The notes under the pieces are model-generated. The model did no database searches and was not told where the DNA came from. It saw only the letters and a list, made by a program, of their open reading frames with translations. Positions 16,675 to 45,729 of a stretch of DNA of 64,000 bases are shown in pieces (within the stretch, counting starts at the first letter, position 1; each line of letters opens with the position of its first letter). The stretch is from Haliotis cracherodii (Eukaryota), in NCBI RefSeq assembly GCF_022045235.1, contig NW_027266330.1, positions 12,710,001 to 12,774,000 of the forward strand, read 5' to 3'. Both the position numbers and the translations under genes were made by a program.

Positions 16675-17033
16675 TTAGTGCAGCAGTATGCTGGTGTTAT
16701 TTAATGCTAAACAAAATTATAGTCTATTTATAACATGTGCAGCAGCATTTTGATGTTATTTAATGCTTAACAAAATAATAGTCCATTTATAACATGTGCA
16801 GCAGCATTTTGATGTTATTTAATGCTTAACAATATAATAGTCCATTTATAACATGTGCAGCAGCATTTTGATGTTATTTAATGCTTAACAATATAATAGT
16901 CCATTTATAACATGTGCAGCAGCATTTTGATGTTATTTAATGCTAAAAAAAATTATAGTCTATTTATAACATGTGCAGCAGCATTTTGATGTTATTTAAT
17001 GCTTAACAATATAATAGTCCATTTATAACATGT
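16675..17033. repeat. Minisatellite, about 59-bp unit, 6 copies
   Basis: acatgtgcagcagcattttgatgttatttaatgcttaacaatataatagtccatttata. Confidence 0.95.
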
Positions 17034-17700
17034 TTATCTCGATGCAATATGACATGGTCAAAACGCACATGGGAAGTTTATGGAGATAGGCTTGTCGGAA
17101 GAGATGAGTTTTGAGAAGTGCCTTGAACATAGAGGTGGAAAGGGGTTTAACATCCTGTCTTATTGCACTTATATAGCGACGTGAATGTACGTGTGTGTGT
17201 TTGTTTGGCTGCTTGTACTAATCAGGACTGATGCAGATTTACAGTGCTAGCTCACTGAGATACCATGCCGCAGTTTAACATGAATACCCCACTCAGACAC
17301 AGTGTACTGACTCCGAGCCGACCAGTCCTTGTTTTAGCCCCTTAATGCTGAGCGCCAGACAGGGTAACAACAAGTACCATCTTTAAACGTCTTTTGATAT
17401 GACGCGGCCGGGCATCGAACCCCAGACATTCCGACGGCCGCTCTACCACAAGACCATGGAGGCGGTCCCTTGAACATAGAGTAGACAGGACAGGTTCAAG
17501 TTCAAATGGGAGCTGGTTCAATGTTACTGTTGCTGCACTTTTCTCCATAGCATCTGGACTTCACAAGAGGGACAGTCAGCAGGAGATTCATAAGGGGGAA
17601 GTGATATGGCCGGAATGTGTGAAATCATCAAGTCTCACAGGTAATCTGGGCACTACTGATACACTGCTGGTTGATGCACAGGGTCTTGTATGTGATCCAG
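17020..17700 (-). mobile_element. L2/CR1-group LINE 3' fragment (ORF2 C-terminus plus 3' UTR) interrupted by a D SINE
   Basis: Removing the SINE gives decayed ...ITYKTL...LLTVP...NQLPFEL...MFKALLKTHLFRQAY, a typical L2/CR1 ORF2 end. 3' end tataaatggactatta. Confidence 0.75.
17135..17467 (-). mobile_element. SINE family D (tRNA head plus MetaSINE/MESC/RUDI-type core), 14-bp TSD
   Basis: Core cgcgtcatatcaaaagacgtttaaagatggtacttgttgttaccctgtctggcgctcagcattaagggg resembles the Meta domain. TSD ccttgaacatagag at 17121-17134 and 17468-17481. Confidence 0.9.
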
Positions 17701-18225
17701 GAGTCCCAGGCATGGTCAGGTTTTATGTGTCAAGCTGTTTAATACACAGTCCACAGTCACCACTCTGGGCTATCTGACATCAGGAGTTCTAGGCATGGTC
17801 AGGTTTTATGTGTCAAGCTGTTTAATCCACAGTCCCCAGTCACCACTCTGGGCTATCTGACATCAGGAGTTCTAGGCATGGTCAGATTTTATGTGTCAAG
17901 CTGTTTAATACACAGTCCACAGTCACCACTCTGGGCTATCTGACATCAGGAGTTCTAGGCATGGTCAGGTTTTATGTCTCAAGCTGTTTAATCCACAGTC
18001 CCCAGTCACCACTCTGGGCTATCTGACATCAGGAGTTCTAGGCATGGTCAGGTTTTATGTGTCTAGCTGTTGAAACACCACAGTCCCCAGTCACCACTCT
18101 GGGCTATCTGACATCAGGAGTTCTAGGCATGGTCAGATTTTATGTGTCAAGCTGTTTAATCCACAGTCCACAGTCACCACTCTGGGCTATCTGACATCAG
18201 GAGTTCTAGGCATGGTCAGGTTTTA
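17698..18225. repeat. Minisatellite, 83-bp unit, about 6 copies
   Basis: caggagttctaggcatggtcaggttttatgtgtcaagctgtttaatccacagtccccagtcaccactctgggctatctgacat. Confidence 0.95.
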
Positions 18226-20792: not shown

Positions 20793-20995
20793 AATGCCAC
20801 TTAGCAATATTCCAGCTGTATGACGATGGTCTGTAAATAATCGAGTATGGACCAGACAATCCAGTGATTCATCTTGTGAACAACGATCAGGGTATGATGC
20901 CAGACTGATAACCAACTTACCAAGCCTGACCCCCGGATCTATTTGGTTGCCTCTCACAACCAGCACAGGTTGCTGGGAACTATTTAAACTGGGAA
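20793..20995 (-). mobile_element. Diverged family A variant whose head is tandemly amplified
   Basis: Family A tail and body, running into the 53-bp array. Confidence 0.75.
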
Positions 20996-21400
20996 TCCCC
21001 ATGGCGTACAACCACTACAGGTTGCTGGGGAACTATTTAAACTGGGAATCCCCATGGCGTACAACCAGCACAGGTTGCTGGGGAACTATTTAAACTGGGA
21101 ATCCCCATGGCGTACAACCAGCACAGGTTGCTGGGGAACTATTTAAACTGGGAATCCCCATGGCGTACAACCACTACAGGTTGCTGGGGAACTATTTAAA
21201 CTGGGAATCCCCATGGCGTACAACCACTACAGGTTGCTGGGGAACTATTCTATCCTGGAATCCCCATGGCGTACAACCAGCACAGGTTGCTGGTGAACTA
21301 TTCTATCAAGGAATCCCCATGGGTACAAACAGCACAGGCTGCTGGGGAACTATTTTAACCGGGAATCCCCATGGCGTACAACCAGCACAGGTTGCTGGGT
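20955..21400. repeat. Minisatellite, about 53-bp unit, about 8 copies, derived from a family A variant head
   Basis: gggaatccccatggcgtacaaccagcacaggttgctggggaactatttaaact. Confidence 0.93.
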
Positions 21401-22001: not shown

Positions 22002-22943
22002 AACAAATATGTGAAACACAAGAGCCCCATTGTTAAACAAACATGTGAAACACAAGAGCCCCATTGTTGAACAAACATGTGAATCACAAGAGACCTATTG
22101 TTAAACAAACATGTGAAACACAAGAGCCTCATGGTTAAACAAACATGTGAATCACAAGAGACCTATTGTTAAACAAACATGTGAAACACAAGAGCCTCAT
22201 GGTTAAACAAACATGTGAATCACAAGAGACCTATTGTTGAACAAACATGTTAATCACAAGCGACCATTACTAAACAAACATGTGAATCACAAGAGACCTA
22301 TTGTTGAACAAACATGTGAATCACCAGAGCCCCATTGTTAATCAAACATGCTAATCACAAGAGACCATTACTAAACAAACGTGAATCACCAGGAGACCCA
22401 TTGTTGAACAAACATGTGAATCACAAGAGCCCCATTGTTGAACAAACATGTGAATCACAAGAGCCCCATTGTTGAACAAACATGTGAATCACAAGAGCCC
22501 CATTGTTGAACAAACATGTGAGTCACAAGAGCCCTATTGTTAAACAAACATGTGAATCACAAGAGGCCCATTGTTGAACAAACATGTGAATCACAAGAGC
22601 CCCAGTGTTGAACAAACATGTGAATCACAAGAGCCCCATTGTTGAACAAACATGTGAGTCACAAGAGCCCTATTGTTAAACAAACATGTGAATCACAAGA
22701 GGCCCATTGTTGAACAAACATGTGAATCACAAGAGCCCCGTTGTTGAACAAACATGTGAATCACAAGAGCCCCAGTGTTAAACAAACATGTGAATCACAT
22801 GAGGACCATTGTTAAACAAACATGTGAATCACCAGAGCCCCATTGTTGAACAAACATGTGAGTCACAAGAGGCCAATGTTTAACAAACATGAGTCACAAG
22901 AGGCCCATTGTTGAACAAACATGTTAATCACAAGAGGCCCAAT
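22002..22943. repeat. Minisatellite, about 34-bp unit, about 28 copies
   Basis: aacaaacatgtgaatcacaagagccccattgttg. Confidence 0.96.
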
Positions 22944-24631: not shown

Positions 24632-25400
24632 GTTTGTTTGTTTGTTGTTTAACGCTGCACTCAGCAATATCCCAGCCATGTGACTGGGGTCTGTAACTTA
24701 TCAAGTCAGGACCAGACAATCCAGTGACTGATACCATGAAAATCGATACATGCAATTGGGTTGGTTGGTTTGTTGTTTAACGCTGCACTCAGCAATATCC
24801 CAGCTATATGACTGTGGTCTGTAAATTATTGAGTCAGGACCAGACAATCCAGTGACTGAGACCATGAGCATCGATACATGCAATTGGGTTGGTTGGTTTG
24901 TTGTTTAACACTGCACTCAGCAATATCCCAGCTATATGACTGTGGTCTGTAAATTATTGAGTCAGGACCAGACAATCCAGTGACTGAGACCATGAGCATC
25001 CATACATGCAATTGGGTTGGTTGGTTGGTTGGTTGGTTGGTTTGTTGTTTAACGCTGCACTCAGCAATATCCCAGCTATATGACTATGGTCTGTAAATTA
25101 TCGAGTCAGGACCAGACAATCCAGTGACTGAGACCATGAGCATCGATCCTTGCAATTGGGATACGATGACATGCATCAACAAAGTGAGCGAGCCTGACCC
25201 CCCATTCCAGTTAGTCACCTCTTACGACAAGCATAGTCACCTGTTAGTGTTACGACAAGCATGGGTTGCTGAAGACCTATTCTAACCCTGATCTTCACAG
25301 GTGAGTCAAGCATGGGTTGCTGAAGACCTATTCTAACCCTGATCTTCACAGGTGAGTCAAGCATGGGTTGCTGAAGACCTATTCTAACCCTGATCTCAGG
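24632..25400 (-). mobile_element. SINE family A with about 4 tandem tail units (about 125 bp) and 3 tandem head units (about 51 bp)
   Basis: Repeated ttgtttaacgctgcactcagcaatatcccagc...atgcaattggg units, then caagcatgggttgctgaagacctattctaaccctgatct x3. Confidence 0.9.
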
Positions 25401-38902: not shown

Positions 38903-39028
38903 TGCGCCAGGAAGGGTAACAACAAATACCATCTTTTAACGTCTTTTGGTATGATGCTGCCGGGGATTGAACCCCGGACCTTCCGCTCTCCGGGCGGATG
39001 CTCTACCACTAGACCACGGAGGCAGTCG
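38903..39028 (-). mobile_element. SINE family D head and core
   Basis: tRNA head gactgcctccgtggtctagtggtagagc...ggggttcaatccccgg. Confidence 0.87.
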
Positions 39029-43881: not shown

Positions 43882-44728
43882 AACATGTCATATATCCAGC
43901 ACAATTTTAAACCAACGACAAGCCACACAAAGCATACCGCACACAACAACTGACTGCATCACTGCCTAAATGATGATGCAGGTTCTTCAACATATCAGAA
44001 AAAAGTTCCCGAGTCCCCCTGGGCTGTAGAAAGTGCCCAGAGAAGCTCCTAGAGATTGTAACACTTGTGGCGTCCAATAATCAAGGTTTATTGTGAGGAA
44101 GAAATGGCCTATCACTGTATCTCATTACGATACCAGAATGTCCCCTGGATAAAAAATCTCCCTGATGGACCCTGTATCCAGTAATGACTTCCATCAATGC
44201 TCGTCCAAGAAACAAAAGGGACATTAGTTTATTAGGTTGCGGATGGCGATGGGATGTATTTGTAAATGGAATATGATATTAGTATAATGGACCTGGGATA
44301 GTTCTGGGATCAAAGGATTGCAGAAATTCATTTTCCTTTGTTCAAAGGTCAAATATATTCATGAAAGCAAAAATGTTGGCCATTCAATTTATTTGGGTCA
44401 TAACATGATAATGACTCCTTTTTCCCCGAGAACATGAGAGTCAGTGACCAATATGACAAAGTGATGCTGATCCTGATCAGTTCTTTTTCTGTTTCTTTTT
44501 CAGTATCATGAATTATGGAGACTTGGTGGCCTTGAAATTATTGAAACTAAGCGATATTCCTCATGAGGGTTTGTGTTTCTTTGGGCAGAATATATGAAAT
44601 GCTGGGTTTCCATTGAACGTGTACAACAAATATATACTACAAATTATACTATCGTGTCGGAAATATATTTAGAACCTATACGAACATAATATCTGCAACG
44701 ATGTATAGAAAATTAAAACGCATCAAAG

Positions 44729-45035
44729 TTTGTTGATTAGTTGTATAAGGCCTCATTCAGCAATATTCCAGGTGTATGTTTGTTTGTTTGTTTGTTGTTT
44801 AACGCCGCACTCAGCAATATTCCAGGTGTATGACGGCCGTCTGTTAGTAATCGAGTCAGGACCAGACAACCCAGTGATTGACATCATAAGCATCAATCTA
44901 TGGATACAATGACATGCACTGAGTCAGCGAGCCTGACCACCTGATCCTGTTAGTCGCCTCTTACGACAAGCATAGTCGCCTTCTACAGCAAGCATTGGTT
45001 GCTGAAGACTTATTCTACCCCGGATCTTCACGGGT
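44729..45035 (-). mobile_element. SINE family A, full length with duplicated tail
   Basis: Head acccgtgaagatccggggtagaataagtcttcagc on the minus strand. Confidence 0.92.
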
Positions 45036-45729
45036 TGCAGAGAAGTGAAACTCTCCAAGACAACAATTACACATGCCAGACCTATATATCTTCTTATATA
45101 AGATAGCTCCACAATAAGTCACAAAGGACAATGAAGAACAAGCATGGTTTAATTCACGATATAACATTATTCGATCATGACGTCATTTCTAGAGATTCGA
45201 ATATGTGCTCGCAACTTGATGACGTTATATACTGGACAACACTATTTTTTAGAAGGAAGTGTCTAGTGGGTTGTTTCCCATAAAAGGGCAATGCAGATAA
45301 ATGCCATTGCCTGCATCCAAAAGTGGGAGAGATATGACAATCGGGATTAGGAGAAAAGGTACAGATAATCGACGTGAGGATTGTGAGAATATGCGGGAGA
45401 TAATAAACTTAACCCACCTGTTTGTTAAATGGATTTGTCTGACATTTCCGAGGTCTGATTCCATTCAGTGAGTTGTCCTTATTAATAGTTTGGAAAATAT
45501 TTTTAAAGCTTGTATATTTTATCAACATCCTAAAGAGGCTGTACATAATGTCAACATCTCATATAAGAAATCAACGACTTGTGGTCGTTGTTTATCGTAC
45601 AATAAAACAATGCACGGTTTTATTGTATGATAAAGAATGACCTTGAGTCGCTAATTTCTGAATTAGAAATACTATTACAGCCTTCGTCAAGGACATTACT
45701 GCTCCTGGATTCAGGCACAGTCTTGAGAG

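Follow-up and report, generated by a model that had tools for sequence, protein, structure and literature searches.

The conserved stretch at window positions 44945–45035 is best read, from sequence comparison, as the head of an ordinary member of the known LP-SINE kind of retroposon and not as a new ribozyme (the window is the whole 64-kb stretch of Haliotis cracherodii DNA analysed here). The first ~48 nt of the element would work as a start module by which the RNA's 5' end is fixed from inside the element; most likely, this module consists of an internal promoter and leader acquired from the 5' UTR of a LINE, as proposed for LP-SINEs (PMC4758252), and a hairpin within it would be an RNA-level feature of that leader. 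We give such a promoter and leader of LINE origin, serving as the 5' start module of an LP-SINE-kind retroposon, about an even chance of being what the head is. In the initial annotation, the same bases had been described as a structured, pseudoknotted RNA head that replaces the Pol III promoter. What stood of this proposal is a head of non-tRNA origin that has to define its own 5' end internally, whereas its pseudoknot and ribozyme parts did not: as judged from the comparisons below, the head fold does not appear to be a pseudoknot, and nothing indicates self-cleavage. Element positions were counted from the usual first G as position 1, with position n corresponding to window coordinate 45037 − n, and the features are collected in Table 1.

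Table 1 Features of the flagged family A copy and of related repeats (window coordinates unless a locus or contig is given)
Feature	Element positions	Coordinates	Strand	Details
Family A retroposon copy		44777..45036	minus	head, body, tail motif and (ACAA)n microsatellite
Flagged head region	2–92	44945..45035	minus	91 bases
Hairpin 5' strand	7–14	45023..45030	minus	UGAAGAUC; identical to the 'loop' strand of the proposed pseudoknot
Hairpin 3' strand	27–34	45003..45010	minus	consensus GGUCUUCA
Proposed stem P1, 5' strand	3–6	45031..45034	minus	CCCG, CpG inside
Proposed stem P1, 3' strand	15–18	45019..45022	minus	CGGG, CpG inside
Most conserved head core	20–40	44997..45017	minus	UAGAAU-N-GGUC-NN-CAGCAACC
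Two 22-nt units in tandem		44951..44995	minus	each capable of a small GYCG/CGAC hairpin
Tail motif		44797..44823	minus	common to tRNA-SINEs and third family; within CGCCG...CGGCG stem-loop
Partial second tail copy		44728..44776	minus	
Full-length family A starts in the window		45035/6, 41078, 61744, 11543, 52029, 25302		
Third SINE-like family		near 55653 and 51133	minus	
Third SINE-like family		near 10533	plus	
Third SINE-like family		loci L002, L007, L012, L022, L030		
Head-only array		25256..25396	minus	51-bp unit, 2.8 copies; directly 5' of another full family A copy
Head-only array		20956..21399	minus	class B-like head, 53-bp unit, 8.4 copies, then element 3' part
Further head arrays		L032-L047 (G000:C1:5953398-5958211), L049-L051, L053, L054		
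More head arrays (examples)		C1:1952727-1952946, C1:4975490-4975821		from genome-wide pattern coordinates

Family A, to which the flagged copy belongs, is an interspersed repeat of about 256–266 bp. BLAST of the flagged copy against the window returned ~20 further copies or fragments at 75–92% identity, and the 18-nt motif GTCGTAAGAGGCGACTAA of the initial annotation occurs 14 times in the window against 0.02 occurrences expected by chance, which together confirm the family of about 20 window copies reported there. The flagged 91 bases have at least 40 genomic matches at 94–97% identity (from 1,964 first-look candidates). When the assembly (1.18 Gb, 80 contigs) was searched genome-wide, the exact conserved core was recovered with class A spacing in 18,422 heads and with one extra base in 7,254, and a second head class (class B) was recovered as 5,212 cores with up to 2 mismatches allowed; the reversed-pattern control for each of these counts gave 0 matches. 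Heads with an intact core number at least 25,000 across the genome, and 8,210 carry the perfect 24-mer ACCCGTGAAGATCCGGGGTAGAAT.

The element boundaries were determined on 35 full-length copies (6 from the window and 29 from further genomic loci). All of them start sharply at (G)ACCCGTGAAG, as had been claimed for copies whose 5' ends fall close to P1, and they end in repeats of the (ACAA)n or (CCAA)n type; copies thus begin at one defined base whatever the flank. A G precedes 6,485 of the 8,210 perfect 24-mers (79%), i.e., the 5' end is well defined, yet off by one base in a fifth of the most intact copies, and the flagged copy itself has an A as its first base (45036). One-base fraying of 5' ends is usual for LINE-mediated insertion, and a templated first-base G and a copied cap cannot be told apart from copy counts. 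Two small-RNA raw-read runs yielded 1 and 3 reads, and in contigs from two runs of uncertain type the family copies end at 45035, followed by unrelated flanks; no transcript beginning at base 1 was seen in these RNA data.

Exact direct repeats of 7–16 nt abut both ends in 12 of the 35 full-length copies, compared to 1.1% (repeats of at least 7 nt) when 5' and 3' flanks of different copies were paired as a control, and several additional full-length copies have flanking repeats carrying one mismatch. The target-site duplications (TSDs) noted initially are thereby borne out. The flagged copy is without a clean one because its tail is doubled (44728–44832, 54-nt period, 1.9 copies). Many 5'-truncated family A copies with intact 3' ends were detected in the window by BLAST. 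The last ~30–45 nt comprise a stem-loop with GGAATATTGCT-N4-GCGGCGT-N-AAAC, a motif common to tRNA-SINEs, as the initial annotation had stated for the tail, and to a third family. This stem-loop is presumably the recognition site of the partner LINE, and since the motif is common to three families, at least three families use one partner LINE. With its variable TSDs, 5' truncation, and microsatellite tail, family A is copied via RNA by a LINE enzyme. The third, SINE-like family has a body of the form ...CACCGAAGTGGTAAACGTC...CATCACTTCGGGC..., the same tail motif, and an (ACTC)n end.

These properties were compared with those of the LP-SINEs, TSD-flanked SINEs reported by Matetovici et al. (2016, PMC4758252) for Littorina, Haliotis diversicolor, H. 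midae, Ostrea, and Saccostrea and grouped there into the families Hdi_LP/Hmi_LP (Haliotis), Lsa_2, and the Ostrea and Saccostrea LP families. LP-SINEs begin with ~70 bp derived from Nimb and RTE LINE 5' ends (Nimb-17_LMi, I-3_DR, RTE-9_CPB), and their body or tail is shared with tRNA-SINEs; the authors suggest that LP-SINEs use the LINE promoter, ask for experimental work on this point, and cite the promoter/ribozyme module of L1Tc as a parallel (PMC4758252). Like them, family A is a short non-autonomous retroposon with variable TSDs (12/35 versus 1.1%) and 3' tandem repeats ((ACAA)n/(CCAA)n), its heads match no tRNA, 5S, 7SL, or snRNA, its tail motif is common to tRNA-derived SINEs, and it occurs in Haliotis. 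Family A is therefore best read as a member of the published LP-SINE kind, an assignment that covers these traits of the sequence. A head of LINE rather than small-RNA origin combined with a tRNA-SINE tail had already been published for Haliotis and other molluscs (PMC4758252), and the initial expectation of a novel kind of element was not upheld. No counterpart to the conserved hairpin, to the two head classes, or to the head-only arrays of family A was found in the consulted parts of the LP-SINE account.

Several observations weigh against the promoter and leader explanation. The hexamers AATATA and ACTAAA, which precede the tail repeats of Haliotis and Ostrea LP-SINEs (PMC4758252), are missing as such from the family A consensus, where AATATT (one base off) and TTAAAC are found in a comparison of the hexamer strings. 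No LINE was present in the 195 kb of genome sequence examined, and inspection of the head by eye revealed no motif of the Inr or DPE type at the appropriate distance. Furthermore, a DNA promoter needs no covarying RNA hairpin, and the covariation of the hairpin amounts to one lineage split, with ordinary folding energy. In the published text searched, the head and tail motif strings were not found, and one body motif string had a sole match, a probe from Haliotis gigantea. This 49-nt pull-down probe for the SNP rs26532113 in ITGA8 (PMC13170236) matches the family A body at 45 of 49 positions (element positions ~74–122, window 44915–44963 in the flagged copy); rs26532113 is a G-to-A change at a CpG, and no mention of its location in a SINE was found in the searched passages of PMC13170236.

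In favour of the promoter and leader explanation, the multimers of the head at element 5' ends recall mouse L1 and its promoter monomers. Tandem arrays are built from the ~48-nt head alone, in units of 44–58 bp that start at element base 1–2, and they often lie directly 5' of an element body. In the mouse L1 5' UTR, promoter monomers of ~200 bp are arranged in tandem. The two systems would be alike in that a 5' start module stands as tandem multimers before the element body; they differ in unit size (~200 bp versus 44–58 bp), and the promoter role of the family A head is putative. The head arrays may stem from template jumps of the reverse transcriptase (RT), unequal crossing-over, or promoter multimerisation. 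Tandem repetition was also observed for the element 3' half together with its microsatellite (24632–25160 and 5909–6137; 128-bp unit, 4 copies), and the copy at 24632–25396 bears both a head array and a 3' array. The window further contains long minisatellites (22002–22941, 61875–62401, 16678–18225, and 30130–30627), its minisatellites including 34 bp × 28, 18 bp × 29, 59 bp × 6, 83 bp × 6, and 70 bp × 7, as well as many (TGAG)n microsatellites.

The head was examined for conserved pairing in an alignment of 64 distinct heads. The stem 7–13/28–34, which had been proposed as the second stem of a pseudoknot, is extended by C14-G27 to a hairpin of 8 bp with a 12-nt loop. In class B, the 5' strand reads UGGGGAU and the 3' strand GGUCCCCA, whereby A9-U32 and A10-U31 are replaced by G-C and G-C: AA at positions 9 and 10 of class A corresponds to GG in class B, and positions 31 and 32 change from UU to CC in compensation. 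Both pairs are AU in 46–47 and GC in 10–11 of the 64 rows. RNAalifold predicted the hairpin 7–14/27–34 as the sole helix, and this structure was paired in 90% of the alignment cells compared to 24–55% in slid controls. The covariation represents one lineage split (two pairs) and not multiple independent events; other 5'-strand variants (GCAGA, GGUGA, GAGGA) leave mismatches and are located in DNA-level tandem arrays or old copies, and no third paired type was found in two pattern searches across the genome, each sampled at 100 heads. Class A and class B heads, and their first 92–101 nt, were no more stable than dinucleotide shuffles (z −0.96 to +0.87). In the flagged copy, position 27 (45010) is an A that breaks the closing pair, for which reason the 8-bp hairpin is missing from its minimum-energy fold. 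A long-range pairing of positions 1–7 with 87–93, seen in one minimum-energy fold, was rejected, as it does not covary between the classes (UGG in class B, GGG in class A). Among the blocks best kept between class A and class B are positions 21–40, positions 81–120, and the tail; positions 21–40 (loop, 3' strand, and GCAACC) are 85% identical in every comparison of the two classes. The head core at 20–40, which covers the hairpin loop, the 3' strand, and the subsequent GCAACC, is retained in all head classes, and the number of 22-nt units differs between family A copies from 1 to 3. From these alignments, the hairpin 7–14/27–34 is probably a conserved RNA feature.

Such a feature could also be an RNA element of retroposition itself, i.e., a site of LINE protein binding, of 5' protection, or of RT completion or template jumping, with transcription being driven from elsewhere. 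The compensatory changes would be expected under this explanation, as they indicate selection on pairing and not on DNA sequence, and head-only arrays whose units run from base 1–2 fit repeated template jumps onto short head RNAs; however, the phase of the arrays is readable only at their edges, the array at window 21399 starts mid-unit, and the same first base in thousands of copies is left unexplained by a model lacking an internal start signal. We consider a role restricted to retroposition possible but improbable.

Rather improbable, and slightly more so, is a strongly degenerate Pol III head with a tRNA or other small RNA as its ancestor, in which TAGAATAGGTC at ~+20 and GGATCGGGTGG at ~+90 would be weak relics of the A-box and the B-box. 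The best-conserved internal blocks (21–40 and 81–120) are placed where such boxes could sit, the class B sequence GGTTAGAAT is similar to the T-loop GGTTCGAAT, and the partner LINE is common to family A and true tRNA-SINEs. Against this, the box positions match at only about 6/9 and 5/7, the T-loop-like motif lacks the invariant B-box C, and the 22-nt repeat alters the spacing between copies. Neither ARAGORN nor Rfam found a tRNA-like structure on family A heads; the single tRNA-like gene called by ARAGORN in the window lies outside them. It is a tRNA-Ser(GGA) at 38953–39024 (minus strand) amid SINE copies and may be a tRNA-SINE head instead of a gene. Rfam searches yielded no match at gathering scores in the whole window, nothing relevant at E up to 10 in 44760–45070, and no match at E up to 5 for class A and class B heads in six loci. 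Real tRNA-SINE heads were detected: as a positive control, the search at E up to 5 recovered two of them (locus L014) as tRNA with 31.9 and 20.7 bits. The statement that the head carries no A and B boxes of the tRNA type is consistent with these results. Two likenesses, AGACCGCC followed by TGGAATA to the 5S box C and class B GGTTAGAAT to the tRNA T-loop, were put down to chance, neither the 5S nor the tRNA model of Rfam having found a match.

A broader proposal sees the hairpin, its 12-nt loop, and GCAACC as a new functional RNA of small size with which the elements of a whole mollusc retroposon superfamily begin, acting either as a minimal self-cleaving motif or by recruiting a protein or the RT and so fixing the 5' end, with short head RNAs seeding the arrays via template jumps. 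This is very unlikely in our estimation.

Less probable still, by a little, is the idea of the head as a new small ribozyme whose self-cleavage at base 1 would free the element RNA from read-through host transcripts. It would account for sharp 5' ends irrespective of the flank and for a conserved hairpin with a conserved loop, and it has precedents, 5' ribozymes being known from the non-LTR elements L1Tc/NARTc (PMC3185411, PMC3383444) and R2 (PMC3774820). Each strand of the proposed stem P1 contains a CpG (C5G6 and C15G16), and all 'compensatory' P1 states in the alignment are CpG decay products (U5-A16 or A6-U15). Double decay was counted in 17,113 class A heads that show no other change over 20 nt, with the paired states U5-A16 in 294 and A6-U15 in 233 heads, two wobbles in 251, and two mismatches in 226. 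Paired states are not favoured over wobbles or mismatches, and hence no active lineage was selected for P1 retention; a like scatter around CCCG/CGGG was observed in class B copies. P1 thus behaves as neutrally decaying CpGs and not as the CCCG/CGGG stem of the initial annotation, which leaves the H-type pseudoknot unsupported: the letters of both stems are present and 7–14/27–34 is compensated, but P1 shows only changes of the CpG type.

Covariance models and topology also count against self-cleavage. No Rfam ribozyme (HDV-like, hammerhead, twister, twister-sister, pistol, hatchet, and others) was matched in the window, in 44760–45070 around the flagged copy (E up to 10), or in the six loci (E up to 5), in agreement with the initial failure to fit HDV, hammerhead, or twister. 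A descriptor of the HDV-like double pseudoknot (6–7 bp for P1, which had to start in the first 8 bases, 3 bp for P3, P1.1, and at least 4 bp for P2) had no solution in three class A copies or in locus L052; solutions in one class B copy (L056) were unshared by the others. HDV-like ribozymes of R2, RTE, and other non-LTR elements (PMC3774820) resemble the head in their position at the first base of the retroelement, and its stem order A, B, A', B' corresponds to the P1/P2 part of the HDV fold. The two stems give only this P1/P2-type pseudoknot, whereas the P3/L3/P1.1 core is missing, P1 is without evolutionary support, and the linker between the two 3' strands (equivalent to J4/2; class A, GUAGAAUA; class B, UUAGAAUU) contains no cytosine. 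The HDV-like fold was rejected on the unsolved descriptor in class A, the missing P3/L3/P1.1, and the linker. The head resembles the pistol ribozyme in that the loop of a 5' hairpin could form pairs with downstream bases beyond an A-rich linker; it differs in that P2 (the absence of which had been recognised correctly), P3, and the G-U cleavage site are missing and the pistol covariance model found no match. Moreover, pistol cuts 3' of its pseudoknot, and in family A such a cut would part the head from the body. Head multimers persist before element bodies, although an efficient 5' cutter would strip them from the RNA prior to copying, the first G is missing in 21% of perfect heads, and folding is no better than in shuffles. 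No result points to the new self-cleaving class that had been suggested. The trypanosome module Pr77 of L1Tc/NARTc combines an internal promoter with an HDV-like ribozyme (PMC3383444, PMC3185411, PMC4035085). As a 5'-terminal module of ~77 nt that is carried by a LINE and its short non-autonomous derivative and that sets the RNA 5' end, Pr77 is comparable to the family A head; both activities have been demonstrated for Pr77, whereas for the family A head either activity would be putative, and the HDV-like fold was not recovered.

Finally, mollusc Helentron-derived elements carry tandem repeats, microsatellites, and satellite-like arrays that family A may recall, but a non-autonomous rolling-circle (Helitron/Helentron, 'pearl'-like) element has a negligible probability, given 5'-truncated copies with constant 3' ends, a tail common to tRNA-SINEs, and variable TSDs of 7–16 bp, which exclude elements of the Helitron type, as these insert between fixed dinucleotides and produce no TSD.

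SINEs are defined by Pol III heads derived from small RNAs. Families with other heads indicate that copy numbers in the tens of thousands can be reached with different 5' modules driving amplification, and a head module of the LP-SINE type could serve as promoter, as RNA processing signal, or as RT handle. With two large classes of heads set apart by compensatory changes in the hairpin, a strongly conserved loop, and natural head multimers, this genome provides a clean test system.
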